This document shows positions 12,973-61,106 of a stretch of 64,000 nt of DNA, in pieces. The notes under the pieces were generated by a model. It had not been told where the DNA came from. It saw only the letters and a program-made list of their open reading frames with translations, and ran no database searches. Positions within the stretch are counted from its first letter, which is position 1. Each line of letters opens with the position of its first letter. The position numbers and the translations under genes are program-made. This DNA is from Basidiobolus meristosporus CBS 931.73 (Eukaryota; Fungi; Basidiobolomycota). The stretch lies in assembly GCA_002104905.1 (NCBI GenBank), contig MCFE01000031.1, positions 124,001 through 188,000 of the forward strand. Reading direction: 5' to 3'.

Positions 12973-13641
12973 ATGTCAGGCTTCTATTTTGCGATTGTTG
13001 GGAACAAGGATAACCCAATCTATGAAGCTGAGATTGGCTCGCCAGCTAGAGAAGTTGCCAAGGTATTTGTTAGAAACCTGCTTTCTACATTCTTCTTAGC
13101 ACTTTATAAACCGTTACGATTTAGAATGACGACACAAAACATTTATATCAATTCGTGGCTCATAGCGCTTTAGACGTAGTAGATGAAATGATATGGACAA
13201 CGAATGCACTGTAAAGTGACTATTTAATTGCTCCTCTTCGCACGTTCCGAGCTTACTCATTTTACTTGTAGTTACTTGAAAACAGTCGACAAATACAACG
13301 ACTGGTTCGTCTCCGCTTATGTAACCCCTAGCAGTATCCTTTGCCTGTCACTATGATTTTCAAAATGCTCTACATTCAATGTATTATCCCTTCACCAGGT
13401 ACAACAGATGTTCGATTGCTGTTGCTTCATGAAGCCAAGAACGATGACGCCATCTTCAACTTTTTCAAAGATTGTCACGAGCTTTATATTCGGGTAAAGG
13501 TCACATTTCTTCAAAAGGTCCACGGTACATTCTTATCCTTTTCAATAGGCTTTGATGAACCCTTTCTATGAGCAAAACTCTTTGATCACCTCTACCAGCT
13601 TTGATACCAAAGTACGTGCTCTTGCCAGAAGATATCTTTGA
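12973..13641 (+). CDS. TRS20: TRAPP complex subunit 2 (sedlin/Trs20), 5 exons
   Basis: MSGFYFAIVGNKDNPIYE..HLYQFVAHSALDVVDE..YLKTVDKYNDWFVSAYVT..MNPFYEQNSLITSTSFDTKV. Confidence 0.93.
13334..13407 (+). other. U12-type GT-AG intron in TRS20
   Basis: Donor GTATCCTTTG; branch-like CCCTTCAC 13 nt from AG; phase 1, restores VTPS-N-VRLL. Confidence 0.8.
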
Positions 13642-14040
13642 TATTTGTACTTTAGCTGGATGCACGTACTATTTTAGTAGAGTTCCTTAAATCTAGTTAA
13701 CATGTAAATAAATGGCATCAGACGAGCTTTGTGATATCATAGCTTACGATCATCTCCTTTCCCTTCCCATACATGTTCAAACATTTTATTGTACTTTGAA
13801 ACGAAATATATATGAATCCTACAATCGATTTGTATCATGTAGATTATATTGATGACTAAACAACTATCGCAGAAATCTCTTTCAAGCCGTTTAACACCAA
13901 TCATATCACGCAGTGGTCATTGGGGGTATTTGATTAGCATGATTGTAAGAAAAAAAGAAATTCAGGGATACACCCCATTTCTTTGGTACAAATGGTTTCG
14001 TTATCTGAACCGCGGTTTGCGCGCTTTCAGTCTAGTAAAA

Positions 14041-15213
14041 ATGGCCAAGAAGAAGAGAAAGACTATTAGACCCTGGTGTTGGTATTGTGAACGTGATTTT
14101 GACGATGAGAAGGTTCTTATTCAACATCAGAAAGCAAAGCATTTCAAGTGCCCCCACTGCTCAAAAAAGCTTAACACTGCTGGTGGAATGGTTGTACACG
14201 TAGCTCAGGTCCATAAGGAAACCATCAGTAAAGTCCCAAATGCTCTAAAAGGGAGAGAATCCACAGATATTGAGATATTTGGAATGGAGGGAATCCCAGA
14301 GGAAGATCAAATCGCTCACTTACAAGCTATCGAAGGTGACAATCCTAGTAAGAGACTGAAGTCATCCGATTCTACCCCCGAGGTTCAAACTCCACCTGTA
14401 ACCATGGCTAGTTATCCACCTTCAGTTGGCGCTTCTTACAGTGTACCTCGTGCTCCACCTGCAGCGTACCCTAGCTATCCTGCTGGTTACATGGCTGCTC
14501 CTCAATATGCAGCGTACTATGGTGTTCCCGTACCACCATATCAAAATCCTTACGGATATAGACCTGGGTAATGACTGAATTTATATCTTTCAGACTAGTG
14601 TTCCTGAACTTACCTCTTTAAACAGGGTTCCTGCTCAATATGCCCAACCTGCTCACAATCCATGGGCTCGTCCGCCTGTACCCGGTGCTGCAATCCCTCC
14701 TCAAAATTACTATGCTCCACCTGCTCCACCGGCACCTGGGACTTCGCCATATACTCAGCCTGCTGCCGCACCCGTACCCACACCAGTACCTTCAACCGGT
14801 ATAGTACCTACTTCAACAACTTATCCTGCTTACACCACACAGCCCACCGCTCCTGTAGTGCCTAGTTCTTACGAACAAGTGGTACCACCTGCTGCTGGTG
14901 TTTTACCGACTGCTCTTGAGGAGGATACTTCCGCCACACCCATCTTAGCCACTTCTACACTAGCTGCCCCAACCCAAGGGAAATCCAGTACTGTGTTGGT
15001 TTACAATGATTCCGAACTATCCATTGTAAGAGGCCATATTCCTTGTCATCTGTGTAAACATTGATGTTAACCGAGCTCTTCTCACTATAGGAGGAAACTA
15101 GAGCACGATTGGACAAATACCGTTATACTGATGAAGACATCAAAAGACAGGTGGAGCAACTTGATCTTTCGATTGAATCACGTCTTGCCGGATTTAAAGG
15201 CAAATCGTCATAA
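14041..15213 (+). CDS. ZNF207: BuGZ/ZNF207-like C2H2 zinc-finger protein, 3 exons
   Basis: [48 protein letters not shown]; Pro-rich middle; GLEBS-like [13 protein letters not shown]. Confidence 0.88.
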
Positions 15214-15827
15214 AGCTTAATTCCGCTAATTTGACCTTCATGTTTCTTATGTTGACGACGTTTGGAGTCCATGATAGCGAGTTGAACGGTATTTGTAAAT
15301 ATGACACGGGGAAATTTCTCCACCCGGTAAGGTATGCGATGCCTGGTAAGAGCTCTTGTACTGTCATCATTGCCGTTATACGGTGGCAACGCCATCCGTA
15401 GCACTCCCCCGTCTTTGTTTATATAAAAGAATCTTTAGAAAAGCTCCATATTAAATCCTCTTTTTGGCTTAGTTCTTATACACAAAAGGCAGCATCGTGT
15501 TGATCTTCAAAGGGTCTGTATAAGAAACGATAGTGATTTTCCAAATGTAAACTGAGTGGGAATGCAACCTTTTTTAGTGAATCGACAGCTTTCTTTCTCT
15601 TAATCAAATCAGCGCAAATATTTGCTCAAGGTTAGTTTATTCCATTCCTGAACGAATATTGTGGTGCCGATCAGTGAACAAACACAACATAATAAACTAT
15701 CGCGAATTCTGTGTCATCCACGCGTTTTTTGTTGGCTAGTTCATTGGATATGATCAGTAAACAAACCAACACTACATCTATGTTTGGTACGAGGCTAGCT
15801 TGACCTTGGATTTTTTATTGTTGGGAC

Positions 15828-16777
15828 ATGGAGGACTACTACGATGTTGATGCCATCCTTGCGGAACAACAAGTATGATGTTGGCCTTTTCCTCAGTAAG
15901 ACGCCGCTAACCTAGAAACCAACCGTTTAGAGATTACCACTGATATTCAAAATACACGCCGAAGGCTTAGGCTATCTTGATGGATCAGAGGAGCCTGATG
16001 TACGTTCAAGGGTTTTGCTAAATAATCTTGTACCGATTATCCGACTTACTCCATCCCTTTATGTTAGTTAGCAGAGAATACTCGACTTGAACTCCCCTTC
16101 TGGCTAGTCAAGCAACTTGCGCAGCAGTAAGTACTCAGCAGTGGAGAAGTACAACTTCACCGTACTCACGCTGCTTTTTAGCCGAGAATGGTTTGAGGTG
16201 GAGATACCAAAGTGCTACGGAGCCAAAGTACGAAACAGCCTAAGGGCCTGCTCAACCAATGTCAACTTCCACTCACTGAATCCATACTATTACTTGTACG
16301 GATTGCTGCTGGTAGATCTGTATCCTCAATGTGACGAGTGTTATTCGGAAACCAGTCTTCTTTGAAACTTTATCCCTTAACTCTTAACTGATGTTTCAGC
16401 CTTGACGACGTTGACCTAAACATGGTGCTCGCAGACGTAAGCCAATTGACACCATCGAGGAAGCGCATTTGAACTGATCAGTAGCATGTAGGCTTTCAAA
16501 GCACGGATCCAGCTAATCATGGACTACACCCAAACCGTCCAGAACCGAGTCCAGGCAGAATTTGTCACCATATTGGACGAGACAGAGAAAGAATGTGCGT
16601 GAGGGAGTTCCAATGGATTCGAAATAACCCAGAGTCTAACCAACATCATACGTTCATTATCTAGTGTACAAAATCGGCGCGGACAGTCAAGCAGCCCTTC
16701 GTAAATGGAACAACCGAACGCTGTTTCGACTCAAGACCGCAGAGGTTTTGCAGATCCATGGGAAATCGACCTTCTGA
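15828..16777 (+). CDS. PSF3: GINS complex subunit Psf3, 7 exons
   Basis: MEDYYDVDAILAEQQ-RLP; LELPFWL; NFHSLNPYYYLYG; LDETEKELYK. Confidence 0.88.
16320..16399 (+). other. U12-type GT-AG intron in PSF3
   Basis: Donor GTATCCTCA; branch CCCTTAAC and CTCTTAAC, the latter 12 nt from AG; read-through hits a stop. Confidence 0.72.
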
Positions 16778-21913: not shown

Positions 21914-23737
21914 ATGGACAAGTACCAAGTATGATATCGTTTGCTCTCTGGTTCTTTCCCTTGGCTTGATTTTGCTCCACATACATTCGATGGCTATGGC
22001 ATGTCGTTGATCCCTTCCCATATCTCCCTTCTCACCTCGAATATGCACGATCCTCTTCAACTGTCACCGAGCTAACCTAAACTTCCTCTATTTTATTATC
22101 TATCCAAATCTCCGTCGTGTGCTTCCGTCTTACTCTTGCACTCTACCCCACCCGACCTTCACGAAACTCTCAATAGAAAATAGAAAAGCTAGGAGAAGGT
22201 AGGTTTCTCCGGCTGCTTACGAACATGAAGGAGAAAGTGAGTTACCATCCTTGCTAACGACTCGGTCGTAATTAGGCACATACGGTATTGTGTATAAAGC
22301 ACAGAACCGAGAAACCAGCGAAGTAGTAGCTTTGAAGCGGATACGATTGGATAATGAAGAGGAGGGGGTATGTTGACCTGAACCTTAGCTTCTATTTTAC
22401 GCTGAATACATGTATATTTTGCGCAATGCAGAGAAGACTGACGTTGGTTTCATTGTCTGAAGGTCCCGTGTACAGCTATTAGAGAAATATCCCTACTGAA
22501 GGAACTCAAACATCCAAATATTGTTAGGTGAGTACGATACCATGAAAAGCTGGGAGAGTTTGTATGCTCGCTTGGTTCAACAATGATTGGTTGTTGCTAA
22601 AGTTTCTTCCGACTGTTCAAAGGCTCTATGATGTTCTGCACACCGAGAAAAAGCTCACACTAGTGTTCGAATACCTAGACTCCGATCTGAAAAAATTCTT
22701 GGATACTTACGGTGGAGACATCGACGTGTTCACAATCAAGGTACATGCTCACTTACAGCAAGTGCTCAATCGTGGGTGTCGTTAATCATATCCTACTTGC
22801 TATTGCTATAGCAACTCATGTACCAACTGCTTCTGGGCATCGCCTTTTGTCACGAACATCGAGTGCTTCATAGAGTAAGAACAGCGATTGCTCTGGATTC
22901 CGTAGGCGTACCGGCTAACCTCTTCCACTAGGATCTGAAACCACAGAATCTGTTGATCAACAAAAAGAACGAACTCAAGCTAGCGGATTTTGGATTGGCA
23001 AGGGCATTTGGCATCCCAGTCAGAAGTTACTCGAATGAAGTGGTGACACTGTGGTATCGTGCCCCTGATGTGCTGATGGGCTCCCGACAGTACTCTACCT
23101 CCATCGATGTGTGGTCGGTTGGATGTATCTTTGCAGGTCTGTGAACGTTCTCGTCCAGTTGAGCAACTTCGGGATTACTCACATTGACATAGAAATGGCA
23201 TCCGGAAGACCTTTGTTCCCGGGAACATCCATTAATGACCAGCTAATGCGCATTTTCAAATATCCTTTTTAAACTTCTCTTGTGCGGCAATTCACGTGAC
23301 CCTGTTGTGCCCTTGACTTTCAGTTTACAGTGCAAGGAACGCCCACCGAGGAAACATGGCCTGGCGTCTCCCAGCTAGCGGACTTCAAGGTAGATCAATT
23401 ACCCTCGGTGTGCCGACACAACTACTAACCACTGGGTGTATAAACCAGAAGGACTTCCCTGTTTATCAGAAGGTACCACTAGAGACCCTCCTGCCCAAGC
23501 TAGATGTGCACGGGATAGATCTGATCAATGTGAGTGGGCGTAAGTATCGATGATATCCGTGACGACTGCTAATTGCTCTGTCCACAGAAACTACTCGAGC
23601 TCCAGCCAGAGAAAAGGATCAGCGCCGAGAACGCGCTTCAGCGTAAGTTATCCACAATCCACAGCATGCGAGATCCCGGTTGACAGGACTTCAATCCCAC
23701 AGATCCATACTTCGACGGGCTAAACAGGAAGGAATAA
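21914..23737 (+). CDS. CDK5: CDK5/Pho85-family cyclin-dependent kinase, 12 exons
   Basis: [62 protein letters not shown]. Confidence 0.88.
23260..23328 (+). other. U12-type AT-AC intron in CDK5
   Basis: Donor ATATCCTTTT; branch CCTTGAC ~12 nt from terminal AC; joins [11 protein letters not shown]. Confidence 0.92.
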
Positions 23738-25056: not shown

Positions 25057-26281
25057 TTACCGCGCCTCCAGGGCCTTGAGTTTGGAGTCCACCAAGTCAC
25101 TAAGGTCCTTTAGACAGGAGTCGGTCAAGGTGTATAAATCGAAGTGGAACTCTCCTAATAAATGGAAGGAAATCGAATTTAGAAATGGTCATCAGTGAGC
25201 ATTGTCAGGCTCCTCGTATTACCCTCCACATCTTCGTTCACATATGTGTTTTTGCTCTTTCGTTCCTTGACAAAATTCACGACATCTACGATATCACTCC
25301 CAGACAGCTTATACAGTTTCTCGGCAAGCAGTTCGCAGTTAATCTAAACGCAAGCATGACGTTGAGTGAGCAATGTTGGATATGTGGATGGCTTCAGTGA
25401 TCGATGTTACCAATTCGGCCTTTTCGTCTTTCTCCGGTGAGATGGACGATAAGGATGGGACCACCATATCGGAGTCTGGTTTGGGCTTCTTTCTGGAAGA
25501 CTTGGCCTTGTATGTAGTGCTTCGTTTTCCTTTGGCGGCGGTGGATTTTTCAGGGGTGGAGACCTCCTCTCCCTCAGAATCCTTTCCACCCCCCAACGCT
25601 TTCAAGAGCGCGCCTTTGGGATTGCTAAATGTCTACAAGCCTAAAGTCAGACCGGCACTTCTTTTGAAGGTAAGGAGCATACTTACGACGACGTGTGGCA
25701 CTTCATAATGAGTGGAGCGAAAATTGAGGTCGTGCTCTAAGGGGTAGGTGGTCTTGTCGACAAAATGTAGGATGACCTGCATATCGAACTCGCCCCAACC
25801 TTTCTCTTGGAGAGAATAAGGCGGTTTGGATGTCACTGTTCAATTACAAAGAGAGGGGTTGTGTGAGTTGGATCTGAGTTGAAGTTGGGTACGTGAGTGG
25901 TTGGGTGTCCGCGATGGCTCGAAATCAACAACAAAAAATACGCGTATTTCTGCGGGAACACGCACGTCCAAGTACTGATGAAAGATTGTGGTGACTCCTC
26001 AGCATACGCCAAGAAAAAGGCGCCACGCGGGCACGCCAACATACAGAGGCTTGTAGAAAAGGAAAAGAGCACTTACTTCTTTTTGGATTGGTAAAGCTAG
26101 GGTGGAGTATGTATTCCACCTTCTCCACATATTCCATGTTGCATCTTTCATTATTTTCGTCCAAACCATACACCGACAGTTTCCATTTGCGAATGGGGTG
26201 GCCACTAACAGGCTTTGCACCCTTCATGATCTCATGCTCAGTAACAAGCTGGACCTTCTTTGTGATCGTGTTGACTTTCAT
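25057..26281 (-). CDS. TAF14: Taf14-like YEATS + ET domain protein, 5 exons
   Basis: RKWKLSV..VEKVEYILHPSFTNPKR..PPYSLQEKGWGEF; C-terminal LAEKLYKL..GEFHFDLYTL. Confidence 0.82.
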
Positions 26282-32353: not shown

Positions 32354-33700
32354 TTATTCACGTCCGGTGAGCTCTTTGGTTTCTTGAACAGTGGCTTCAA
32401 GATCTTCACTGACGTATTTATCGAAAAGATCCTGCTTTCTTCTTCGGACAAGAAAGCCCTCCACATCCTTCTGAGATGGAACATCCACGTGGGCAATAAA
32501 CTTCACTTCGGAGTTATCCACATCGCCCTCAGCCACAGAAATGCTGGCTGGCTCTCGGGAGATGCTTCCTTCGCCTCCTTTCCTCTTCCTGCCCTTGGCG
32601 GTTCCTTGGTCATACTCCACCAGTATAAGGTCGTTGCTTTCTTCCAACCTAGCCCTCACTTGAAGGGAAAACCGGGTTCAGTACGGAGCCTGTTTCCGAA
32701 GGTAAACAAGGATACTTACGCTCTTTCTCTTGCTTTTCCTCGTATTCCAATAAAATACCATCGTCTTCATCGCGATAGCCGTAATAGTCGGCATTGACAT
32801 TCTTATACATCTCGTAGCGCGACTTGGATTCTACCTCTTGAGCGGCTGGATTCACCCGTAGCGAAGTTGGCCGTAAGTACGCTATTCACTGATTGGCCAG
32901 ATAAATACGTTACCTTCCACTTCAAACAACTCCTTCACCCCAGGCAGCTCTCTCGCTCGACCAAAGTACCTAGAAAAGATGAAAAGTGAGGGGCAGTCCA
33001 CCGGCAAGCCTTAATCTCGGAGATTTTACTTGTATCCACGGTTCCCAGGCACCGATTTGCCTTCATTGTCAATTATTCGCGGTGCTATTCTCTAATTACG
33101 CGAATTGAACGTGAGCTTATTCTGGTGTTGACGAACAGTCGACTCGACTGAACTATACCCTATAATCCGGACCGCCTAGATCTTTTATCTGTCTTTCCCA
33201 ATGACCCTTCTCTCGAATGAGCTTGTTGATCTCGTCGTTCATATCTCTGACCTGATAATCCGAAAGTCCGGCTGTCAATGAAAGAGGTAAAAGTAAGTAT
33301 ACGGCATTATGGCGGCCTCACTCGATACACTCCAGCCAAACTAGTACGATCCTACTAGATTTATACATACAGTTCTGGATCTGGGTCACTTTGCGAGAAA
33401 TTTCGTTGATAATTTGACGTCTCCATTTCTCTGCTTCCGGTAAACTACGGCACTCTGAGGCTAGATAAGGTCTGCGCTCATTCTTGTTGAATCCTAGTTC
33501 TGCGGCTCTGGCATCGCGGAACCGATGGAGCATAGATCTGGAAAATAAATTACACGCTTTCTTAGTAAACAATGGTCGGAATGGGAGCCAAGGTGGGCGG
33601 GTATTACTGAGCCTTTTCTTCATTACGTGCCTAGATAGGGTTAGGTAGGTATGTTTAGAGACATGTTTGGGTGTAACGAGTAAAACGGAGAACATACCAT
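32354..33700 (-). CDS. ISY1: Pre-mRNA splicing factor Isy1, 8 exons
   Basis: [72 protein letters not shown]. Confidence 0.92.
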
Positions 33701-34590: not shown

Positions 34591-36959
34591 ACATCCCCTT
34601 CATTATACATATACACAGTGAGATAATAACAATAAACACATTCATCATGCATATTTGTTATAAAGATCGGTTCCATTGGTATGGCGGAGGTGTATTTATG
34701 GTGCTCTGTAGTGTTGAAATCATTCCTACAAGTCCTGGTACACAAGCATTGACCTGTCGGAAAAAACCAGTTAGCATCTTACAATTCTGTGATTAAAGCT
34801 GGCTCTAACATTGCTTGGCAATAATTGTTTGGAATCTTGAAAAAGCAAAGAGTGCCCTTGAACCCCTGCTACAATCTCATATAACCATCTCTATGATACA
34901 GCCTTAGCTCTGGTTCTGTGCAATTCATGCATTCACTTGAACCTTAGGTAACTTATCCACTAGAAAAGTATCAATTCACCCATTTGCAATACTCCTAAAC
35001 CAGGTGGACAGTATGTACTTTTCCGGATCCTCAATAAAGCTCATTAGATTACATTCTCTGGCTGGGCGACGATGGGAACAAATTCACTTACACCTCATGT
35101 CTAAATGTTTACCATATCCGCATACAAAGGACAGCGCATCCAAGGCTGCCGATTAATAATATTGAGTTGATTCCGTTTTCGTGGTTAATTAAAGCCAACG
35201 ATTTTATGATGCATGAGGCTCTTATCATGCCGCCAAGTTGGTCTCCATCCCAAACAACCCGCCGAAATGAATTTGGCTACAGGGCCTCATCCATTAGTGG
35301 AATAAGGGGGATCCGACGCTACCAGTTTGGTAGAATGACAATGATCAAATGTGGAGCTCCTATTAGTGCGGCATCCCTATTCATGAAGAAAAATCGAGTT
35401 AAACTTAGGCTGCATTTGAAGAAAAAATGTTCTCACCGTGTGGGATAGGAGTACTCAGATGTAGATTACTGTTTGCTAGCCCATCACCGCGCTGCCAAAT
35501 CCGACCGTAAACGGGTACATTCCCATCTTCCCTGTCACTGACGAATCTATACAAGATCGATATCTAGGATGGCACATGCTATGGTCAACTGATGGAAAAT
35601 GGGAAATGATTATCTCGAATGTGTGACCAGTGTCACTTTACGTATATGTTCAAAAATGTCATCTCTGATGTGAACTCCAGATAAACTTTCACACACCTGC
35701 GAGCATACTGTAAGCTCCATCGGTGAGAAAATGCTGAAATCCGGAAGGCTTGGGATTATCCTTGCCCATCCGAGAATCCCCGAGGTCCAGTTTAACCATA
35801 TGACAGGATGCCCGACTGCTTTTATAACCGGCTGGGGGAAGATTATTCGCATACTCTCACTTCCACATGAAAATACATGGCTTGGCCACCAAGATTGACT
35901 GCAATCAAGATTCTCGCCATATAAGGATGCCTCATTAGGAGTCAACTGATTGTCACCAAAGTTTTGCATTCCAAAGTGAACCATGGACTGGGATCAATCG
36001 AAAATCTCATGTGGCCTGGCGCGTCGAAATGGCAGTGTAACGCATTGTGTCATACATCCATCAGTCATCTAATGTCAGCATTGGCTAGCTGTCACTTGAG
36101 TACTTTGACATCTCGGGGGGTTTCGGAAAGCCCTTATCTCTTATCACCCGTATCGTCAGGCTCAGAAATACTAGTAACCTGTGTAACACAGATGATCTAT
36201 CCAAGCGGCGTCTAGTCTAACAGGTCGCCCACTGCGCACCATTCAATTCATCCATAGCAGTCGCAGACACAGTCCAACCTTAAAAAAGCAAGTCTTGCAA
36301 AATCCCGATAAGTTCCACTTTGATACATCGTTAATCTCTTGATTATTAAGACAATTAGCAGCGGGTGGCTAAATTAATTGAGTCGCCAGCATTCGAGGCC
36401 AGAACAGTAGATCCTTTGTCTATTTGATGTTACTTGTTTGTGCCGAAACGGTCGATGGAGGCTGGAGGTTTTAATTAAGGTGCGGGCTCCTGGCACGCAA
36501 GTGAGCAATTTAGTGAAATGAAATGTGTAGGGGGAGGTTGAGCTAGGCGAGTGAGCTAGGAGGTAGTTCAGTTACATCCAGGCAATCCAGGATAATCCTG
36601 CACTTATCGGCACGGAGATACATAGATTAGCCTCAGAATCGGCGGATTCCCATGATTATCCACGCCCTTCGGAAGCGGTGATCAAGTGAGACCCTCATAA
36701 TAGCTGTCAAACGGTTTGCTGGAACTAAATCAAGTAATGACAAAACGATAGTAGCCGTTTAATGGTGACCAACCGAGTCTACAAATGGATCTGACCCTGG
36801 TGCTTGTGAACGACTTGATTAAAATACAGTACTAGTGGTGGACGGGGTGAGGCGAAAATATCAACATGCAAGGAGCGGATATCATTACATTAGTGGGGAG
36901 GAGCGGGAGTTGTACAAGAGGATGGAGAGGTGGGAATATTCAATATTATAATGTAATCT

Positions 36960-37694
36960 CTAGTATAGCTTCTGCTTCTTCAGGTAGGAGGACTTCTTTG
37001 ATAAAGATCCCGAAGAATATCTACGCTTGCTAGAGCTGGTTTCCTCTCTTTGGGCCTCTCCGGAGAATTGTATCAATTCCAGGTCGCAGCCCTGTCTTCC
37101 GAGCTCGCCATTTGCCTGGGCACTTTCGATCATGGGCTGCAGGATTCTTCTGCGAGCGTTGATGAACCAGTTGCTGATCTGATTCATGGTGAGTTTGGTT
37201 TCCATTGCTAGGGAGATCTTTTCATCTTCAGTGGGATATGGGTGCTTCACGTGCTTGGCCAGCCATGATTTCAAAATAGCGGTGACTGCTTTGGGAAGGT
37301 TGCCCCGACGCTTCTTTTGGTTTGGTTTGGTAGGGGTGGTGATCTCGGAGCTGTTCTCAAACGAGGATGGTGCTTCAGCGTATGTGGGTGATGGGGATAG
37401 GGATGCGCTGGAGCACGATGAGTCGGAGCTTACGCTTTCCCTGTCGGCCTCATAGTGGACAGGCTCAGGGGCGTAGCTGTAGCCAGTCCATTCTTTGGCG
37501 TTGTGGAAGAGCATCTCTTCAATGCGCTCTTTGTGTCCGCCAATGTAGCTACGAGGTTGCTGATCATTATGAATGATGACGACAGGGCTAAATACTCGTG
37601 GCTATTGATGGAAGATGGATTAGATGGAATGTTTACATGCAGAGGAGTGTTTCATGCGAACCTTAGAATCAGGGTAAGAAAGGTGAACGGCCAT
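36960..37694 (-). CDS. TALE-class homeobox transcription factor (Cup9/TGIF-like), 2 exons
   Basis: [47 protein letters not shown]; intron 37602-37661 gives start [11 protein letters not shown]. Confidence 0.85.
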
Positions 37695-40123
37695 GTCAAG
37701 TGTCAGTCAATAATACGATGGAACAGGTGCGATGACTATGTCGGTTGAGGAGGCACAAGAATATGGGCAGCCTAGGAACCAACGGGCCTTTTTATAGATT
37801 CCATAGCGATTGTTGATTGATGCGTGTAGTAATTCATCATTAAAATCAGTGTAATGTGCCACAAGCATCTAAGGTGTTAAATGGTAATTACAAGGAAATG
37901 TGATAATCAGCACTCAACCGATCACAGCAACGGCTCAGTGTTTTGAGTGTTTCATTCATCGCTAGTTGTGCCTTCAGAAACCAAGTTAATAATTCAATGC
38001 TCATGCACACCACCTGAGGAATTAGGGCAAAAGGGGCATTTGGATTGGGGTGATGTCAAAATGCGTTTGAGTTTGGACTAACTCGGTTGTTTCGCAATAT
38101 TTCTGCATACAGGAGGACATGCATTAGTGAAGAATTTGTTTCAATCGTGTAAATTCGGGTGAAATGAGCTTGAAAGGCGAGCCGTGTAACACAGCAAATT
38201 TGTTCAACTTCAGACCTGCTACGGATGATAATCTAGGTGGTGATCTCAATGTTGCATGCAATGATTTAGTCGAAAGGTATTTACAATGTAAACCGACATG
38301 TATCTACAATGCAGGCCAAACAAGTGCGTTGGAGCAACTCCCGGATTTCTACGCTGTCCTCGAACCGGTTGGTTTGGGTTTCTCATGGCCAATTTAGTGG
38401 GAATGTTCATCACCCAAGAATGCACCACCCGTGCATTCTGCAAGGGACTGGAGGCGTGTTATGAAATTCAGCTCATCTGCCTGGTAACTGCTGCTAACCC
38501 ATCGCTTCATCTTGGCTCTCTAGTCAGTGTGGTTAAGCTTTTCTCATAGCACTTGGTTAACCAACCTTAAACGAGCCAGAACTAGGGAATTTTGAGGCGT
38601 GTGACTCCCTTCCTAAAGAGTAGCTCGTACACCCCACTGATATAATTGATAGTGTCATTCATAAAAATTGTGGAGCGCTGAAACCTTATCAACGAAACAA
38701 CCCTTTGTGGCTCTTTATCAAGCAAATCTATCCTCAGCTGATGACTTCTTTATCGATGCAAATAAAATCACGGATAAATTAGTTTCTACGAAGCTTGAGC
38801 GCATCTCTCGCCCTCGCCCTCACCAGTATTGCATGACCAAAATAATCAATTAGTATTATACGTGTTGTTATATTACTCCAACCTTCCCAAAGTGGTTCGG
38901 GTTGGTCGATGGTGTTCGATGACTACTATTGCGGCATTCCTCTTGAATGATGACAGTTTGCCATTTTGGAGTGACACCTGTCATTTCTTTCCGCTCCCCG
39001 ACAATCTCCGATGGCTTTCTGGTTTGTAAGCCTTTCCTATCTACACCATTGATGTTTTGTCCGTGGGTGAATCTTGGCCGGTTGACAAATGAACAATCTT
39101 CATCTCGCATCTCGCATGTATAGTACAACACAAGTAATTGGTGTGCAACAGAAGGGTCTTCAGTGAGTGAGGTTCCGGTGTAACGGCTTCAGGCCACGAG
39201 AGATGATGAGCCACTCGGCGGATTTAAGCTTCTATTTACATTGATGCGGATAATCTTGAGTAGTTACCAAGCAGAGTGACCACTTTTGTCTGTCAAAGTG
39301 TGGGTTTATCTGCCCAGTCTGTCCACAAATCAGTGGTCAGGGTTCCGTGACCCGTATTATTTTCGGAGGCTACTGATGTGTACTCTACCGATGTGACTGC
39401 CATGGAAAAATACTACTGCTAAATGTGCAGCCCATATCTATAATTCCGTTGGCACGGCACGTGCTTGACAATTGGGGATGCAAGTTATCTCCAAATATTT
39501 TGATGGGGCTGTTTGGTAGTATGAAATGAGTAGATGCATGTTGCCCAAGTGGAACTGGTTCAGTTTGAAGGCTCTGGAGGGGCACTCCACATTGAACAAA
39601 GGATCTTCAGTACTCTATTCCCAGGCTATAACACCCACATTGCTGATACTGATATGAATCCTATAGCATGACTGCCCTTCACTTGAGCAATGTGGCACAT
39701 GCACTATCTAGTAGCATAGCTGCAAGAAATTCAGAGGATTCAAATATAGACCCTAAATAGTGGTCCAATATGACTGGGCAGTGCCCAAATAGCAGCAAAA
39801 CAGCCAGTATGACCAGTGATTTGAGAGGAGGTTGCTTCGAAGATAGGGGTGAGAAGGGAGTAGTTACTCATACCTAATTAAAATTGGATCCATCGACTAT
39901 ATACTATAGGCTGTGTCATTGGCCCCTGATATCCCCTCCTCTCCCCCTAAACATGACTTGAGGGTGCGATATGTGCGTAGTGTATAAATACAAAGGAAAA
40001 TGGAGAGAATTATTTGCGATTTGAGCTGGTGAATTTGACTTCTTTGGTGTGTAGGCTTCGCGAAACCCATCTTTTCTCCTCAAGTAATCAGTCAAAATTC
40101 CGACCAACACTCACAAAGATAGG

Positions 40124-40665
40124 ATGTCCCAACGCAGGACTGGGTATTCCATTTGTTATAATTGTGGCGCTCCTGGACACCAAGCGAAACAGTGCAGTAA
40201 GGCAGAACCCGTCTGGTAATTAGTTAATTTTCTCTAGGCCAATATCCCAATCGTAACCAATGAACATCTACTAGCTACAACTGCAACGAGACTGGCCACC
40301 TTAGCCGGGACTGTGACGAACCAGTTGCTACCAAAAAGTGTTATCGTTGCGAGTCGACTGAACATTTGTCGCGAGACTGCCCTGTAACTCTAGCCGACGG
40401 ACCCGAGTGCTACAAGTGCGGCAAGTCTGGCCATTATGCAATTGGATGCCCCGAAAATGTTGGCAAGTTCAACAAATCGTGCTTTACTTGTGGTGAGTTT
40501 GGCCACCGATCCAAGGATTGCACGAACGAAAGCAAATGCTACAGCTGCGGTAAGACCGGACATATCTCCACCGATTGCTCACAAGTAGGCCAAGTCTGCT
40601 ATGGATGCGGTGAGAATGGTCACATCAAGAGTGACTGTCCTGATAGAATGGCTAAGGTCAACTAA
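40124..40665 (+). CDS. GIS2: CNBP/Gis2/Byr3-like protein with seven CCHC zinc knuckles, 2 exons
   Basis: Seven CX2CX4HX4C motifs from CYNCGAPGHQAKQC to CYGCGENGHIKSDC. Confidence 0.87.
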
Positions 40666-40860
40666 AAGCAATTTCCCACCAATCCTAGCCCATAATTTAT
40701 TCTTTTACCCAAGAGCCTCTTCATAAATAAATACTGGTTGAACGTTACTGACATCAATTATTGGTCCCATGACGAATCCCTGATCTTTCCAATTTGATTA
40801 GAAATTCTCTCACCAAGGACTTTGGGCAGTATTGTGCTTTAGGCGCTCACCTCCGCCAGT

Positions 40861-41678
40861 ATGATAAAGTCAGTGCTGATATTCAATAATCACGGGAAGC
40901 CTCGGTTGATGAAATTCTACCAGCAGATCGTAAGAACACTGAGTCTACCTCGAGCATCTTTCGAAACCATCGGTTTACTTACATTGGTTTCCCTCTTAGG
41001 ATGTTACTATTCAACAAAAGATTCTAGAGGAAATATTCAGTCTGGTCTCTGAAAGACTAGATACCGAGTGCAACTTTCTGGAGGGAAGCACGCTTTTGGG
41101 GGGACCTGACACTCGCATCATTTATCGAAACTACGCGACTTTGTACTTTGTGTTTGTGGTGGATTCCTCGGAGAGCGAGCTCGGAATATTAGACCTGATT
41201 CAGGTAAGTAGGACCCCCCTGTCGCTACCATATCCTTTTACTTATATAGAGCACGAAACAGGTGTTTGTCGAAAGCTTGGACCGCTGTTTTGAGAATGTC
41301 TGCGAGCTCGACTTGGTATTTTAAACACGACTTTAAGTTATTCCTCCCCTCTTTCTAATAGCTTACATCCCCCCCCCCTACCTGTAGATTTTCCATTGGG
41401 AGGAGGTAATTAATGGCAGTTGATATTTCTGTTCAACCCTCACTTTCTAATTCTCTGGTTTAGATTCATCATATTTTAGCTGAAGTGGTCACCGGTGGTA
41501 TGGTAAGTGCACAATATCAGACAACATGAATATAAGCTAACACTGCCCTGTGCAGGTTCTTGAGACGGACCTTGAGAAGATTACCCTAGCTATCCGGGAG
41601 GCAAACAAGTTGAAGAAGTCCAGTAGCTATACAATGTCTTCCATGAAACTAGATCAGCGTAGAAACTTCATTGGATAA
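40861..41678 (+). CDS. APS3: AP-3 complex sigma subunit, 6 exons
   Basis: MIKSVLIFNNHGKPRLMKFY, YRNYATLYFVFVVDSSESELGILDLIQVFVESLDRCFENVCELDLIFH. Confidence 0.92.
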
Positions 41679-45155: not shown

Positions 45156-47715
45156 CTACAGCTCTACTAGATCCCGCGAGTTGCAAGCCAGATCAATTTC
45201 GAATCCCCCATAGCCATCAAATACCAAGGCGTTATGGTGATACTTTTGTAAAGCTGTGTTATGGCTAACGGTGACACATGTGATCCAAGATCCTGGCATC
45301 TACGGAACAAGCGTTCTTCAGTTTTCGCATCTAGGGAGCTGGTAGCCTCATCAAGAACTGAAGGGAACATGGTTGGTCAAATGTTGGTCTGGGGATAAGG
45401 TAGAATGTCACTTACTAGCAAACCGAGGCCTCCAGTAAAACAGCCGCGCAAAAGATAGGCGCTGTTGCTGTCCGGGCGATAAGAGTTTGTCCCAATTTTG
45501 GCCAAAGTCTTTATCAAATCCAAGACTCTCCTCGAGGCCACTGAGGTCGACCTCTTTCAGTAGATTGCGAGCCTCACCATCGTCAACTACGTTTTCAGGA
45601 AATTTAGTGAATTTAGATCATTGAGTTATCCAGCGCATAACCTACTTGATACTAGTCTTCCGTCAGGATGGCCAGGATACACCATCTGATCCTTCAAAGT
45701 TCCAAACGAGAGGTAAGGAATTTGAGGTAGGAACAACACATCCCGGGCATTCGTTAGCGGCGGTGTTGATATATGTCCTATGAGATTGTGTTCAATGCAA
45801 AATACAAAAGCCAAACCTGCCGAGAAATCATAAATACCCTCACTACATGGCCACAGGCCACAAATCATTCTCAGTAGGGAGGTTTTCCCGCATCCGTTTG
45901 GACCGGTAATAAAGAGGCTCTCACCCTGGTGAACTTCGAAACTCAATCCTGATAGAAAAGCGTCAGTCGACGAATGTTTGTATCGTGTCTACCAACGAAA
46001 ATACCTGAATATAATTGCTTTCCAGCGGGTGTCGTGCAGTTGACATTTTTCAAAACGATCGAGTCGGAGTTGCGTCTAAGGATTGCATCGTCAGCAAATG
46101 CCAACAACTGGTCAACAGAAGTAAATGCTCACTCGAGGGTTTCATGGTAAGGATACTCGATATTTCGGTTTTCAAGCTCATTGTCGATATCGTTCATTAC
46201 TTCAAACATCTGGCCAATACGCGCGGTGTAGCCAGCTAAATCAGTAAATCTCTTTGCTTGTTGTACGACGAGGGTGAATTTGTAGTTGAGATACATGATG
46301 AGAAAAGCGTTCTAAACAATAAGATTGTCAGCATGAAGACTGTTTCAACCAAGAGATTGATGTAGCATTACCTTGCTGATTAATGCGCTTAGATCGGCAT
46401 TGTCTATGGAATCGTATTTGTGGGTAATGAATATGGGTATAGCGATGACGATATAGCTCAGAATGGTGCCAAAGTATGAGTACAGCTGAGTGCCACCTTT
46501 GGAAATTACAAAGTTAGAGTCATGCTGAGGCCTAGAGGCTATGCTAGAAAACCTACTATCCAGGAAAAACTGTTTCCTGACGATTTTCAGTTGACAACGT
46601 ATCAACGATGAAAGGGATTGATCCATATGCTTCTTCTCTTGGTTTTCACCTCCGTAGAAAGCGATGGACTCGGCCATGGTTCTTGCACGGACGTGCATGT
46701 ATCTGATCGGATATCTTAGTACGCTAGGTCTTTGCCGCAACGCGGTAACCGTGTTTACCTATAGTTTCCTTCATAATTCTCTTTCAAGTAGATGAATTTG
46801 ACGATTGGGTCGATCAGACACTTGTTGGCAATGGAGCTAATTACAAAATAAGAATAGACAGCGAGCGGGCCCACAAATCCAGAGATTGACCAGCACTTGT
46901 AGGTATAATATACAATCATGAATGGCGTGATGATCGTATTCTGGGCTATCTCACTCATTTCAAAGGCGAACTTGTCTACGTCCTGTGTAATCCGTTGATC
47001 ACTACCAAGCATGTCAGTGACACTTCAAGAAGAGCAAATCCATGCGATACTTACGGGTTATCAACACGCTCGTCGCTAATTAGCTTGTAAAATATCGATG
47101 GCTGTATATATTTGTTCTGCAGTGTTCTCGATAAGAGCTGGCGGACTTTGACTTGGAAGCAGTTTCCAACGAATATCATGCTACTCTTTCCCTATTTGTG
47201 TGAATAGCTGTAAGATACCTGGTCTGCTCTGCTTCAGTGAAGCTATAGTTTTGGCTTACCAATGCTGAAAAGGTTAGCAGACACCCTGAGTACATCAGGA
47301 GTACAAGGAAGCCACCGTAATCACGCTTGCCGAGTTTCTCGTAATAATGGCTGGTGAGAGTACCCGTGAAATAAACCACCACTTCATTCAGAGTACTGAC
47401 TATCAGCAGCCCAAGGAACAGGCTGGTGGTTATGTTTGGGCGTGGGAAAGAGAAAATGATTCGTAGGATTTTCTTGAAGCGCCTGAAAAATTGCTTGTTG
47501 ATTTTGGGCCTATTTTCTTTCATGTCGTCCTCCAGTTTGTTATCTTCCGGCCTGTGTCTAGAGCTTGTTCGTAGAGTAAATATGGGCAAAAGTTTTTATG
47601 AGAATTCCTCGACTTACTTCGACCGGTTTTGTTGATACCCGTGGTCTTCGTCGATATCCATGCTTTCGAAACCAGTCGTTGCTGAGCTCTGTAAAGGTTG
47701 ATATGCAGCAACCAT
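45156..47715 (-). CDS. ABCD4: ABCD4-like half ABC transporter, ~11 exons, with a 1-bp deletion at ~45285
   Basis: [17 protein letters not shown]-like [13 protein letters not shown], Walker [34 protein letters not shown]. Confidence 0.8.
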
Positions 47716-51729: not shown

Positions 51730-54700
51730 ATGGACTTGGAGTCCAACGCCGCTGGAATCATAGAATGGGTATGTTCTCACCGTCATCTAAATAACCTGTA
51801 GTCTTACATGTATCTTTCGCAGGTTAATACTTTCGGCTCTATTACTCGTAAAGCTGAAACAATTGCCGATTTTTCTGATGGGATTCTCCTATGGGAGGTA
51901 CTCGCTGAAATGTATGCTGTACTTCCAGGCTATTGCTTCTTCTCACTACATGACCGGTTACTTATGCTTTGTTGAACGAACAGCGATCCTCAGTGGTTTA
52001 AACTCATTCGGTCTGCTGACGTTGGAGACAACTGGGTTCTAAAATTCAATAACCTCAAAAAGCTATACAAATTAATTACCCGATACTACGAAGAAATCCT
52101 GGGCCACTCCTCAGACTTACTAGATGCACCCAACCTTACCTCCATCGCCAAAGACGGGGAAATAAACGAAACCTTGAAGCTGGCTTCACTCATCGTTGCT
52201 TTGGCGGTCCAGTGCGAAAGCAACGCAATCTACATCGAGAAAATCCAATCTCTTACCCAGGAGGCTCAGCATGCTTTGATGTTGGCCATTGAACAGGTCA
52301 TAGTTCTTTTTTGAATCGGGTCTGTTGACCACCGGCCACTAAACCGTTCTCTCGATAGGTCATGAGCAAACTTGGTGACGAACAAGCTGTGGAGAAAGTT
52401 GAGAATCCTCAGCTTATTGCGTAAGTAGTATTTGCGTGAAGTGAAGGTGGTGCGAGTTAACATGGTTGTGCCCGTATGTAGGGACCAGCAGATCCTTGAA
52501 TTGGAGGCCGATAGGGCTCGTGTGATAAACGAGCATGAGGAGCTTAAGCATAACTACAACGAATTAATGGAGGACCATAAGCAGCTTGAGTACAAGATTG
52601 TCGGTATTCATTGGGATCTTTACGCAACTATTATTTATTCACATCCCTTATGATATTAGGAGGATTTAACGACCGAGAAATCCGACCTAACGAACAGACT
52701 ACGGGATTTGGAGCAAGTAGTTGCGAGGGCTGACCAAACTGGCAAAGCAGATTTCTTGATGAGAACCGAAATTGACAATCTGAAGCAAGACTTGTATGGC
52801 TTTCTTAGTGACAGTCTAGATTGATTGAGTGCACCATACTTACTTCGTTCACTTCAGGGAACGGGCTGAGACTCAACGTCACGAGGCCGAGATGCTCTCC
52901 AGTCAACAGGAAGGCCTAATCAACGACCTTAACCGCAAGGTTCGCTTTTCTCAAAAACAATGGCATTCATGATTTCAGACTAACTTGTCAATCAGCTTGA
53001 GGATATTTCCAAGAAAGCCGATGAGGCGACAAAATTGAAGGATCAGTTGCAGGAATATAAGCACGCTGCTGAGAAGCTTCAAAAGACAGAGAATGTGATT
53101 GAGAAGTACAAAAAGAAGCTGGAAGAAAGCACCGATCTCCGCAAGCAAGTTAAGGTATGGGGCGTGGTAAAGCTGGGTTCGGGGCTCTGATATATACTAA
53201 TGAGCCTATTAGACTCTGGAGGATCAAAACAAACAGTTGGTTGAGAGAAATCATCACATCGAAGAGGAGTATCGTAAAGTCAGCCAATTCAAGGCGTTAA
53301 TGGATTCCTACAAAGATCAGATTGCGAATCTAGAAAGCAAAAACAATCTTTTGGTGATCGAGAAAAACAAGCTGGAGTTTGAATTTGGAAAGCTCAAAGA
53401 GCAGTACGATATGCTTGAACTAGAGCGAAATAGCGACAACGAGCAACTCCAAGTTCTTGAAGATCGCCTTCGTGAACTGGAGCTTGGCGGTAATTGTTTG
53501 TGAATAGTTTGCTGTACTCCTTGGTTTTAACGTTTAGTTCCCCAGGTGGAGGACTCGGTCTTGAGCTTAACAGAGCTCATAATGGAGATGGAGATTCTGA
53601 AGTTCCCAGCCAAGGTCTCAGTGAGGCGCTGGCGGAGTCTAGTGCCACAGAGCTGCAAGTATAGTACCGACTCCTTACTAACCGATAGTTGATAATAACT
53701 GGTGCATTTTTTCCAGGAAGCTCAAAGTAATGCGCCTGGAACGGGAAGTGCAGGCAATGCACCAGACAAGAAACGACCCTGGAAACGCCCAGCAAATAAT
53801 TTTGTTGGAAAACCTATTGGAGGATTCCAACAGAATGAAAGGCAAATTCGAGCAAGTATGTCACAGAATTCAGGCTTTTCGTTTACCAGCGTCCATACTA
53901 ACCTGGCATTTTAGGACTATCTCAAAGCGCATCAGCAAAACCTTGTTCTTGAAAACGAAGTAGAGATGCTGAGAGCTGCTGCCTCCGGTGAAGATCCTGA
54001 TCGGTATGACACAAGCTGAACCACCACTACAGACATCAGTAAGATGCTGACACATTCCTGCATCTAGTGCCGCCAGCGATTTCGCCCTCACCCTGCGAAT
54101 GAGACTGAATGATTCTGAGAAGGAGCTCTCTGAAGCGAAGGAGAAGCTTGCCGCAGCAGAGGCGAAGCTTGCAAGTGTTGAGAAAGAGCTGGTGATTTGT
54201 AAATCCGATCGTATCCTTTACACTACGAACCAGTGGTTTCACCATCCAACCTGCATTCCTTGTTGTCCTTGATCGTATTTCACAGTGAACTTGGTCGGAA
54301 AAGACAAACTAGACGCTCTGGCGGCCATTCGCGAAGAGGCAGGTGCCGAGATCAACAAGCTTCAAAAAGAATACGATAGCTTGGTTAGTCGCAACCGCGA
54401 GCTCGACGCCGAAAACAAAAAGCAGATGCTCCAGATCAATGAGCTCCTCATCGAAAAGGATTCAGTTCAAACGCAGAACATCCAAAGCAAAGACATCTTG
54501 CTTGAAAAAGAGCGAATCAACAGGTATTGCTGAATTAGCCCGTCTCCAATTCTCCCTGCTGACTGATTACTGGGTTCCAAGTGAACTAAAGGCAACGCTT
54601 GCAGCATTGGAGAGTAAGAACAAGACAGGCGATGCGGAGCCTCTCAAGAACCAGCTGCTTACTGAATCCCAGAAAAATCTCAAGCTTCTCGAGGAGATTG

Positions 54701-55253
54701 ATAAAAAGAACAATGACATCAACATGTTCTTGGCGAAGTTGAAAAAGGCCAAAGAGGTAGTTGTATGAGGCAAGTGCGTCCTGACGTTCATTTGCTTATT
54801 TCATTCGCTATAGTATATTCGCCATCAAGACTACAAGATGAAAATGCTCAAGGAAAAGGCCGAAACAGTTCCCAAGGTTTGTATGAAGTGCCTTGGACCG
54901 AAGCCAGCCGGTACTCATCCTGCTGGATACATTTTCAGATGAATTACGAGGAGGCTCTTACTTCTCTTCAAGCTGAACTCACCAATCGCGACAAAGAAGT
55001 GGGCAGATTAAAGGTAAGTCAAACTCGAAGCGTTCGCGTAATAGAGCGGTAGGCTAATCGAGAAATTTGCTTCCAGGCACTGGTCAACGAAACCCGCGTG
55101 CAGGCAAAGAGAGAGCAACAACTAATCATCTCTGCCTGGTACGACTTGGCCAGACGCGTTCAGCGAGATGTAGCGGCACCGCAGAGAAATGGGCCGACTT
55201 CGTGGCTAGGTCAGCAGAGGCGTACACTGGATATCCCATTGAAAAGACGTTAG
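51730..55253 (+). CDS. HOOK: Hook family dynein/kinesin cargo adaptor, ~17 exons
   Basis: IIEWVNTF..DFSDGILLWEVLAEIDPQWF..NWVLKFNNLKKL; long coiled coil; C-terminal LIISAWYDL..PTSWLGQQRR. Confidence 0.88.
54211..54285 (+). other. U12-type GT-AG intron in HOOK
   Basis: Donor GTATCCTTTA; branch GTCCTTGAT 13 nt from AG; joins CKSD-L-NLVGKD. Confidence 0.82.
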
Positions 55254-57035: not shown

Positions 57036-57382
57036 CGCCAGCCTCGAGGAATTCAGATACCGATTAACCGTAAAGGTGAGAGTATTTATAGTTACCCAAC
57101 CCTTTCTCGAGAATTATCACATCAAATCACAGATTCTACCTCATTCATCACTGCCAATGTATTCCCGTGGCACCAAGTCAGGATCAATATAAGCACCATA
57201 AACGATTTTTCTGTGTACCCCTCGGCGTACCTATTTGGAAGACCGTAGCAAGCTGTCATCAAATATGCCGATTTATTACTAATGATAGCTCAGTGGATAG
57301 ACTAGTTGAGATGATACAATTGGATTAAACACTGATTTAAGTAAAGTCCCTTAGTTTCAGTATGTTCCCTCTACCTTGTATT

Positions 57383-58574: not shown

Positions 58575-58744
58575 AGATAACCAAGCAGCATGTAAATGAA
58601 TTCGTCTACCCGGAGTTATTGTGAATCTTAATATATTTCTACTTCAATACACAGAAGCCATTTCTATAGAATACGATTCAAAAAGAACTGAGCTGTTGTT
58701 GCGACGCATGGAAACAATAATATTACAGAGTGATTATAGGTGGA

Positions 58745-61106
58745 CTACATCTGATTGGTCTCAGGAATAATGGAGTTTGAGATGTCAAGCAATGCCTCGA
58801 TTGACGGTTGCAGTTGACCTTGATTAGCTTGTAGAATTAATTCGCATATGTCAGCCTCAATATTGGGAAACATGTCTCTTAGTGTAGACAGTGCTTGGCT
58901 ATATTCCTGGTATTGCTGTTCTTGCATCATGGCGTTATGTTGTCTTTGTATTTGGCTGAGGGCACCCGGATATGCTGGGTTGGTGGATGGATTGGGAGGG
59001 CTGGACTGTACTTGTGATCTGAGATACCCGCTGTTAGCGGACTGTCTGTGGTTTTGCTCATACTCATCATCAAAATCGGATCCAATGTCTGAGCCAACCG
59101 AGTCTCTAGCTTGAGGATGCAGATGGTTTTGCTCGGATTGGCCAGGGCGGAGAGTATCATCAAAGCTGCGAGATCTAGCCATAGGCTCTGAGGAGCATTG
59201 CTTCCGTGCAATTTCCTCGACTGCTTTATCGATATTTCTAATAGAAAATTGTTAGAGCAGAGATGTGTTGGACTGTACGTCGTACGTTGCGCTTGCCTGT
59301 TAAACTCTTCCTCAGAAATAGAAAGCTGCTTGTAGTCCATATTCTCGATGAAAGAGATAGCCCCCATCTATTCAAGGTTGGTTTCTATCAGTTAGAGCAA
59401 TGAAACCAGTGCCAGGGTTCGATGTCTCTTACTAGGTTTGTCAAGTAGTACTCCGACTCGGCATGGAGCTTCTCAGGTCTTCTAAACCGTGATATGTACC
59501 TAAGGATAGCTAGTATCAGCACCGGGATAGTATAAGCCCCCCTCATCGCCACTTACTGAACATTTGATACAAGTCGCTCCGGATTAGCGCGTAACACTAC
59601 GAAGATCAGGATCGGAAGAAACTTATCGGCACCTGCTTCAGCATCCACATGCTTCAAAAAACGTGAGTCAAAGTTAAGGATACAACATATGACCACAACC
59701 AAGTCACACTAAGCACTGAAGGCAAAAGGATATCAAAGATCACAATGCAACAATTCAGAATGCAGATAAGTTTGTCGCGAGGAGCCTTGTATGTATTTAT
59801 CTTCGCGAGTTCTGATGATTATGGTGTTCGGATTAATACAACAGCTCCATGTATATAGTTTCGCTGATGATAGCTACATACCAGCTTGAGCAAAGCCCAG
59901 GAATGACTCGTTGTGCTTGTTTACGGGAATATCCAGATGCTCCTCTTTTATCCAGCGATAAAGCTGGACTTTCTGGTTAAGGATGTCGTCTTTCTCCACG
60001 TCGTCAGCAGTGAGAGGGCAGAAAGTGCTAGGGTAAGAAGGGAGCATGAGAAAGAGCTTCTAGCCACTCGGAATAAAACCCAATATCTACTATTTATAGA
60101 GCTTGTTCATAATTAACTTTTCCATTCCCTCCAACGCATTTTCAAAGTCAACTTCGGAACATCTGGCCCAGACTTCACAGTTCCGCATATCGTACGCGAT
60201 ATCCTATTCACAGGTAGGTTTTAGCAAGGTGTTTGCTTTGTGCTGAAACGGGTCACTTACGTTCAAGAAGCCATGGATAGCTTGAATTTGCTCGTTTACA
60301 GTGTATGGTTTACGTTGAAAACTAGCCAGAAATCTAACCAAGTTTTAGCACTCGATTGTTATGGAACTGGTGGAAAGTGTAGTCACCTTTTTAGACTGCG
60401 TGCAACAGGAACGGCACTTCTATGTCGGATTTGGTCCAAAAAGCGATGATACTCGAATTGGTCGGTTTTTTGAGTATTCTCCGGGCTGTCCGGTGCATTG
60501 AGAGCCTTATCATGTTGCATACCAGAAGTCGAGCTAGGCGTACCACCGTAGGAGATTGATTTCTGTAAACTTTCGCCTCGAATTCTTCTTTTAGCAGCTG
60601 TTTTACTCTTGGCTTTTGTTGATTGCTCGTCTGATACTTCGGTAGGAAGAGTTATTGAGTCCTCCGAACTCGCTTGGATCGTAGGTTTTTCTGATGGATG
60701 ATGGGTTATTAACAAAGGAGAGGGAGCTGAATACGCAAAGAGAAGAATCTCAACCATTTTCCAGATTGTTGAGTGGATCGAATTCAGCCACCAGGTCGTT
60801 TCTCGCCTTATGGCCGGAGCCAGATGATGGAGATTTCTGTTGGTCGAAATCATCTGGAATGTCAGGGAAGGCCTCTATATATATTTTCGGCGTCAAAGCT
60901 TGACCATCTCTGGAGGAATTCAAAATGAATGCGAGTTTTCTCAAATAAATGCTGAGAGGAAATACTAACTGCATAGTGCTCTCGTTAGAATCATCAGTCT
61001 CCTGGGGTAGCAAAGTATCCTGCCCCGTATTCAGTTGGAGTTTCTCTTTTAGTTCGGCAGATACACCGTTATCCTCAAAGCTTTCGGGTTGCACACTCGA
61101 CTCCAT
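58745..61106 (-). CDS. VPS9: Vps9 Rab5 GEF with C-terminal CUE domain, ~9 exons
   Basis: YHRFLDQIRHRSAVPVARSLKRFL, KINTYKAPRDKLICILNCC, GADKFLPILIFVVLRANP, EYYLTNL, AISFIE; CUE LRDMFPNIEADI. Confidence 0.9.
59663..59733 (-). other. U12-type AT-AC intron in VPS9
   Basis: Donor ATATCCTTTT; perfect branch TATCCTTAAC 11 nt from terminal AC; joins CIVIF-G-FLKHV. Confidence 0.95.

Follow-up and report, generated by a model that had tools for sequence, protein, structure and literature searches.

According to genome-wide surveys, Basidiobolus meristosporus has the highest share of minor (U12-type) introns among fungi. In the count of Larue and Roy 2023 this share is 0.554% (n=249; PMC10639083), and Olthof et al. 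2024 give 237 minor introns, or 0.5%, together with genes for U11, U12 and U6atac and, for U4atac, only a divergent candidate (PMC11347168). Minor introns are described as over-represented in older genes (PMC10639083), and the counts are genome totals, with no analysis of local clustering in the passages considered (PMC10639083, PMC11347168). Both the richness of Basidiobolus in minor introns and its working minor spliceosome are thus already published. Here we analyse the same intron class in the same organism, in a window of 64,000 nucleotides (nt) from B. meristosporus CBS 931.73 (contig MCFE01000031.1 of assembly GCA_002104905.1, record positions 124001-188000; coordinates below are positions in this window). 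Exact matches of the encoded proteins tie the window to this contig, and its pyruvate dehydrogenase E2 exon shows 100% identity to a protein assigned to strain CBS 931.73. Five U12 introns, two of them AT-AC and three GT-AG, lie within 48 kb, each in another gene. The host genes are old housekeeping genes, encoding the TRAPP subunit TRS20, the GINS subunit PSF3, CDK5, HOOK and the Rab5 exchange factor VPS9. We think it very probable that all five are genuine, ancient U12 introns, that their local share of 4.8% is a sampling peak in a genome with about 0.55% of such introns, and that two further candidates, in ISY1 and ABCD4, are a major-type intron and coding sequence, respectively.

In the established model of the minor spliceosome, applied here by analogy, U11 would pair with a rigid donor /RTATCCTY and U12 with a branch site TCCTTRAY near the 3' end of the intron, and catalysis would be carried out by U4atac/U6atac-U5. 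Some counterparts of the introns studied here have been described in animals. Mouse Cdk5 is documented with a U12-dependent intron (PMC5224493). Human TRAPPC2 (sedlin) is a minor-intron gene, and a disease mutation affects the 5' splice site of its minor intron after exon 4 (PMC7507305, PMC8199999). Minor introns are also described in Rhizophagus irregularis (Larue and Roy 2023), which belongs to a phylum other than that of Basidiobolus.

Five introns with U12-type signals

The five introns share the rigid 5' splice site /RTATCCTY, with four exact RTATCCTT and one GTATCCTC, all located at exon boundaries. Each also has a TCCTTRAY-like branch site in the range of about 10-20 nt upstream of its 3' end, at 11, 12, 13, 13 and 19 nt. 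Four of these branch sites deviate from TCCTTRAY by at most one mismatch, and that of TRS20, CCCTTCAC, by two. The introns are 69-80 nt long and end in AT-AC or GT-AG; each of them restores the reading frame, and the curated gene models are open. The models that contain the U12 intron reproduce the public product lengths for TRS20, PSF3, CDK5 and VPS9, and junction-spanning alignments to solved (PDB) structures of CDK5, sedlin and VPS9a are gap-free or nearly so.

Gene models were curated by hand, and public gene ranges and product lengths, available for most genes of the window, served as an external check. A home-made single-strand dynamic-programming gene finder was used as a scaffold only: it fused adjacent genes and produced antisense calls, and with strand masking it still missed weak donors such as GTCTGT in CDK5. 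Enumeration of splice paths that reach the public product length was ambiguous, as a spurious CDK5 path of 292 amino acids (aa) also exists. Product length was therefore counted only alongside homology.

In the TRS20/sedlin gene (12973-13641), the intron at 13334..13407 on the plus strand (74 nt, GT-AG, phase 1) has the donor GTATCCTT, and its branch site lies 13 nt from the 3' AG. The five-exon model gives 138 aa, which is the public product length, and its exons abut sedlin residues 79 and 81, with the split codon 80 between them and no gap. The intron of PSF3/GINS3 (gene 15828-16777) spans 16320..16399 on the plus strand (80 nt, GT-AG, phase 2) and combines the donor GTATCCTC with a branch site TCCCTTAAC placed ~19 nt from the 3' AG. 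Seven exons yield the public length of 187 aa. The upstream exon matches residues 70-111 of a solved GINS PSF3, and no solved homologue of the downstream exon came up at E<=0.05.

CDK5 (21914-23737) has 11 introns, among them the AT-AC intron at 23260..23328 on the plus strand (69 nt, phase 2), with donor ATATCCTT and branch site CCCTTGAC at 12 nt from the 3' AC. The 12-exon model has its ATG at 21914 and its stop at 23737, and agrees with the public gene in range and in length (292 aa). Only the AC end keeps the frame, since use of the AG two bases further downstream breaks the homology. In human CDK5, the exons on its two sides correspond to residues 198-216 and 219-237, so that the split codon 217 and residue 218 fall between them.

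The HOOK intron occupies 54211..54285 on the plus strand (75 nt, GT-AG, phase 1) in a gene that we curated to 51730-55253, and shows the donor GTATCCTT and, 13 nt before its AG, the branch site TCCTTGAT. Our model of this gene stays open over 819 aa and has 17 introns; the annotated length of the B. ranarum orthologue is 825 aa. On the minus strand, the VPS9 intron at 59663..59733 (71 nt, AT-AC, phase 1; curated gene 58745-61106) has the donor ATATCCTT and, 11 nt before its AC, the branch site TCCTTAAC. Its flanking exons match residues 145-168 and 184-208 of Arabidopsis VPS9a. The curated gene has 8 introns and encodes 571 aa; up to the public end point, the model equals the public 555 aa, with one acceptor corrected on homology grounds.

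The public models of the last two genes differ from ours in extent. That of HOOK is truncated to 53730-55253, with 361 aa. The public VPS9 model ends at 58796 without a stop codon, the frame staying open to the stop at 58745, and it omits the last 16 residues of a C-terminal CUE-like tail. At the other end of VPS9, an open reading frame (ORF) of 118 aa at 60753-61106 was considered as a separate gene and rejected, as it is the first VPS9 exon.

Conservation and age of the introns

The syntenic loci of B. ranarum (GCA_040143965.1) were found via the orthologues of E2, NDH2 and UreF, and the gene order is common to both species. U12 introns are present at the same positions in all five genes, and donors and branch sites are retained. 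Overall identity between the introns of B. meristosporus and B. ranarum is 40-69%, and their lengths differ. The TRS20 intron of B. ranarum is 58% identical and has the donor GTATCCTT and the branch site CCCTTAAC at 13 nt. In PSF3, the donor is GTATCCTA and the branch site, TTCCTTAAC, is perfect and placed at the same distance of 19 nt. The CDK5 intron differs in length (152 nt in B. ranarum vs 69 nt, 40% identical), and it has the donor ATATCCTT, the branch site TCCTTAAC and the AC end. HOOK shows GTATCCTT and TTCTTAAT at 12 nt, flanked by identical protein sequence, and VPS9 shows ATATCCTT, TCTTTAAC and AC. Since the two signals are constrained and the interior drifts, this is the pattern predicted for a functional U12 intron.

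A search with CDK5 exon 7 reached the woodchuck, Marmota monax, in which an intron of the form ATATCCTT...TCCTTGAC...AC splits CDK5 codon 217 after two bases. An orthologous position in a distant lineage was thereby found for CDK5. The mammalian and the fungal AT-AC introns interrupt the same codon (human residue 217) in phase 2 and have the ATATCCTT donor, and in both a branch site of the TCCTTGAC type precedes the AC by 11-12 nt. They differ in length, with 69 nt in the fungus and ~560 nt in the woodchuck. As an AT-AC intron stands at the same codon and in the same phase in a mammal, this intron is older than the split between fungi and animals, and the CDK5 comparison is direct evidence for it.

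A similar correspondence is suggested for TRS20, whose phase-1 intron interrupts the codon that aligns with sedlin residue 80, TRAPPC2 being also a minor-intron gene. We take the TRAPPC2 minor intron to follow c.238, the end of exon 4, which is the codon and phase of the fungal intron. We also assume that the human intron is AT-AC, and the fungal one is GT-AG, so a switch of subtype would have occurred.

Donor scans and rejected candidates

RTATCCTT has nine matches on the two strands of the window, against 4.8 expected from dinucleotide shuffles, and 3 of 100 shuffles reached nine. Four of the nine are at sense-strand exon-intron boundaries (13334, 23260, 54211 and, on the minus strand, 59733), and the match at 59683 (-) coincides with the branch site used in the VPS9 intron. 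The others were set aside as chance matches: in the AP-sigma gene, the one at 41230 falls within the polypyrimidine tract of a major (U2-type) intron; the one at 19406 (-) lies opposite the coding strand of NDH2, in its coding sequence; that at 32715 (-) overlaps the GTAAGT donor of ISY1; and that at 46156 (-) lies in ABCD4 coding sequence. Their number (4) is about what the shuffles predict. The hexamer ATCCTT at +3 to +8 is matched at no more than 4 of 6 positions by any of the 99 other introns in the window. A relaxed scan, with one mismatch allowed in the donor and one in the branch site, gave 167 combinations in the window and no sixth U12 intron; apart from the known introns, all are antisense, coding or intergenic. 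A bare RTATCCTT at a plausible boundary is to be taken with caution, being a false positive in about half of the cases here.

Two such cases are the candidates in ISY1 and ABCD4. For ISY1, a U12 donor GTATCCTT at 32715 would open an intron at 32649-32715, but it starts 4 nt inside an ordinary U2 intron, at 32659..32719 on the minus strand (61 nt; donor GTAAGT, branch CTGAAC, 3' CAAG), as read in the sequence at the donor, GTAAGTATCCTT. The U2 model gives 284 aa, the public length, and the U12 model gives 282 aa. The U2 model also restores an L-R-A-x-L-E-E stretch that presumably resembles human ISY1. In ABCD4, the proposed donor at 46156-46149 (candidate intron 46076-46156) is coding sequence (E-Y-P-Y) of the upstream exon. 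An ordinary U2 intron begins 24 bases further on, at 46076..46132 on the minus strand (57 nt; donor GTGAGC, branch GCTGAC, 3' TTAG). B. ranarum has GAATACCCCTA where the window has GAGTATCCTTA, that is, three synonymous third-position changes that leave no GT and conserve EYPY, and its own donor is downstream at the equivalent place. No U12 branch site is present in the ABCD4 candidate. With one alternative acceptor, the U2 model arrives at the public length of 635 aa; the U12 model gives 625 aa.

An earlier note on this DNA had assigned full U12 signatures to the introns of TRS20, PSF3, CDK5, HOOK and VPS9, and signals, frames and conservation in B. ranarum confirm this assignment. Two extra U12 donors claimed there, in ISY1 and ABCD4, are refuted by the U2 donor 4 nt upstream and by the synonymous changes in the coding motif, respectively.

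The 3' region of ABCD4 shows a separate anomaly. An apparent 1-nt frameshift at 45275-45292 (-) leaves ...RRCQDLG in one frame and the conserved ABC-transporter tail (ITCVTVSHN...) in another, and the public 635-aa model seems to read through in the incorrect frame until a stop codon at 45167. The shift may be either an assembly error or a real lesion.

Local density of minor introns

The curated models contain 104 introns; with one unmodelled join in a dynamin-like gene, the 20 intron-containing genes of the stretch at 12973-61106 have ~105. In this dynamin-like FZO gene, splice-path enumeration yielded no model of 793 aa, and we infer its third intron. The local U12 share is 5/105, or 4.8%, ~8.6 times the published genome mean. 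The U2 introns modelled (n=99) have a median length of 62 nt, and GTAAGT and GTATGT are their most frequent donors. A G at +5 is found in 64 of the 99 and a C in 3. The two classes also differ in phase: phase 0 is found in 47 of the 99 U2 introns, and the five U12 introns are all in phase 1 or 2. This agrees with the general avoidance of phase 0 by minor introns. Intron density in the stretch is ~2.2 per kb vs ~0.5 genome-wide (44,946 implied introns over a genome size that we take to be 89.4 Mb), and some genes are especially intron-rich, namely CDK5 (11 introns), HOOK (17) and ABCD4 (11).

We simulated genomes in which 249 minor introns were placed randomly among 44,946 implied introns. A pre-chosen block of 106 introns contains at least five minor ones with P = 3.3e-4, and some run of 106 consecutive introns does so in 42% of simulated genomes. 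When minor introns are restricted to half or fewer of the introns, such a run appears in at least 99% of simulated genomes. Since the window was singled out from 1726 windows surveyed, the sliding-run figure is the relevant one and the fixed-block figure is not. A run of 106 with at least seven minor introns, the upper count of the earlier note, occurs in 0.5% of simulated genomes. For a shorter run of 70 introns with at least four minor ones, the figure is 76%. The verdict thus changes on dropping the two false positives, because seven would have been rare. As a small control, a 41-kb stretch with ~14 genes on a different contig of this genome, taken for unrelated reasons, had no U12 intron. 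A non-random origin of the cluster is not demonstrated; chance should produce a local cluster of such size in some part of the genome.

The other claims of the earlier note fared unevenly. Its count of roughly 110 introns is close to the curated one of about 105. A minor-intron share of 4-6% holds locally at 4.8%, but its upper end of 6% is not reached. As to an unusually minor-intron-rich genome, the species does have the published fungal maximum, although 4-6% is not a property of the genome, for which the surveys give 0.5-0.554% (PMC10639083, PMC11347168). That minor-intron genes cluster here is true as a description, at ~8.6 times the mean, and not significant genome-wide (P ~0.42). A working minor spliceosome was also proposed; it is implied by the five introns being of U12 type, and it agrees with the published U11, U12 and U6atac genes, U4atac being given only as a divergent candidate (PMC11347168).

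Discussion

The five U12 introns are very probably inherited relics and not local gains. Minor introns are known to concentrate in genes that are old and rich in introns; such genes fill the window, and this helps the local peak, which is neither a property of the whole genome nor a demonstrated functional cluster. Several observations weigh against this picture. When physical distance is considered, with 249 introns uniform over 89.4 Mb (the genome size assumed above), five within 46 kb have P = 0.0026, and the chance reading depends on distance being measured in intron order and not in bases. No minor small nuclear RNA genes were found within the window. The five junctions are supported by homology, by the lengths of the public models and by conservation between species, and would be predictions to that extent; Basidiobolus transcript contigs were absent among the protein-search matches. 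PSF3 is the least certain of the five, with a branch distance of 19 nt, larger than the usual optimum, and a donor that ends in C.

These features of PSF3 raise the question of whether some of the five introns, PSF3 foremost, are spliced by the major spliceosome despite their U12-like donors, as hybrid or minor-like introns. In addition to its GTATCCTC donor and 19-nt distance, the 3' region of PSF3 has CTGAT and TTAAC motifs that U2 could use, and Olthof et al. 2024 describe "minor-like" and "hybrid" intron classes (PMC11347168). However, B. ranarum PSF3 retains GTATCCT and a perfect TTCCTTAAC at equal distance, both AT-AC introns show the full U12 consensus and not the U2-type AT-AC form, and a C at +5 is rare among the U2 donors here (3/99). 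We find it hard to favour major splicing for any of the five, and consider it very unlikely. It is also hard to believe that the window is representative, which would mean that minor introns make up several percent genome-wide and that mis-annotation has made the published counts severe underestimates. The truncated public HOOK model speaks for such a view. Nevertheless, public lengths match the U12-containing models in 4/5 genes, and those introns are therefore annotated; two independent surveys arrive at 0.5-0.55%, and the 41-kb control loci with their ~14 genes have no U12 intron. Hence we give this view hardly any weight.

Non-random clustering deserves somewhat more attention, although we also regard it as improbable. 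It could arise from slow intron loss or conversion in a syntenic block, or from co-regulation through minor-splicing efficiency. The physical-distance value of P=0.0026 argues for it, as do the spacing of the introns (three within 10.8 kb and two within 5.6 kb), the unusual intron richness of CDK5 (11), HOOK (17) and ABCD4 (11), and the gene order common with B. ranarum. Yet the low physical-distance value arises because the stretch is gene-dense and intron-dense, and shared gene order is expected anyway in a congener. Moreover, a chance run appears in 42% of genomes and is near-certain if minor introns occupy the older half of the genes, the five genes are functionally unrelated, and the whole genome was inspected with its extremes reported. 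For these reasons we prefer ancient introns at a sampling peak.

It is tempting to speculate that minor introns are over-dispersed in Basidiobolus, surviving in blocks of old, intron-retentive, syntenic genes, but we think this doubtful too. Over-dispersion would follow from regional variation in the rates of intron loss and of U12-to-U2 conversion, and local retention, not gene age alone, would then shape the persistence of minor introns. If true genome-wide, it would bear on how minor introns get lost.

The importance of the five introns is mainly confirmatory, as the fungal record holder is already published and all five appear to be present in public gene models. As by-products, the analysis gives firm coordinates for five U12 introns with support from two species, and corrections to the public models of HOOK, VPS9, YEATS and ABCD4.

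Other features of the window

The public model of the YEATS gene (25057-25222, minus strand) has 246 aa and a stop at 25179; with an extra intron at 25155-25222 the product becomes 264 aa, as in the annotation of the B. ranarum gene. A TALE homeobox gene (36960-37694, minus strand) has a gene-free gap of 2-3 kb on either side, at 34600-36900 and 37700-40850, in otherwise tightly packed surroundings, and no ORF, tRNA or Rfam match was found in the two gaps. Nearer the start of the window, a low-GC region (0.375-0.378) at 300-6400 has, on both strands, broken pieces of Ty1/copia-type retrotransposons. The pieces cover gag, the pre-integrase, the integrase core and the beginning of RVT_2, and there are at least two copies, in opposite orientations. 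The region is followed at 8019-12472 by a tandem array of four genes for FMN_red (quinone reductase-like) proteins of 207-208 aa; one of these genes is on the plus strand and the other three are on the minus strand.

A paralogous block on contig MCFE01000252.1 (54209-95195) has second copies of NDH2, a gene of 118-123 aa, YEATS, TALE homeobox, RPL23 and E2. Copies of TRS20, PSF3, CDK5, HOOK and VPS9 are missing from that block. B. ranarum has a matching second NDH2-YEATS block. Judged from gene content, the paralogous blocks point to a probable old duplication, either segmental or of the whole genome, after which genes were lost.

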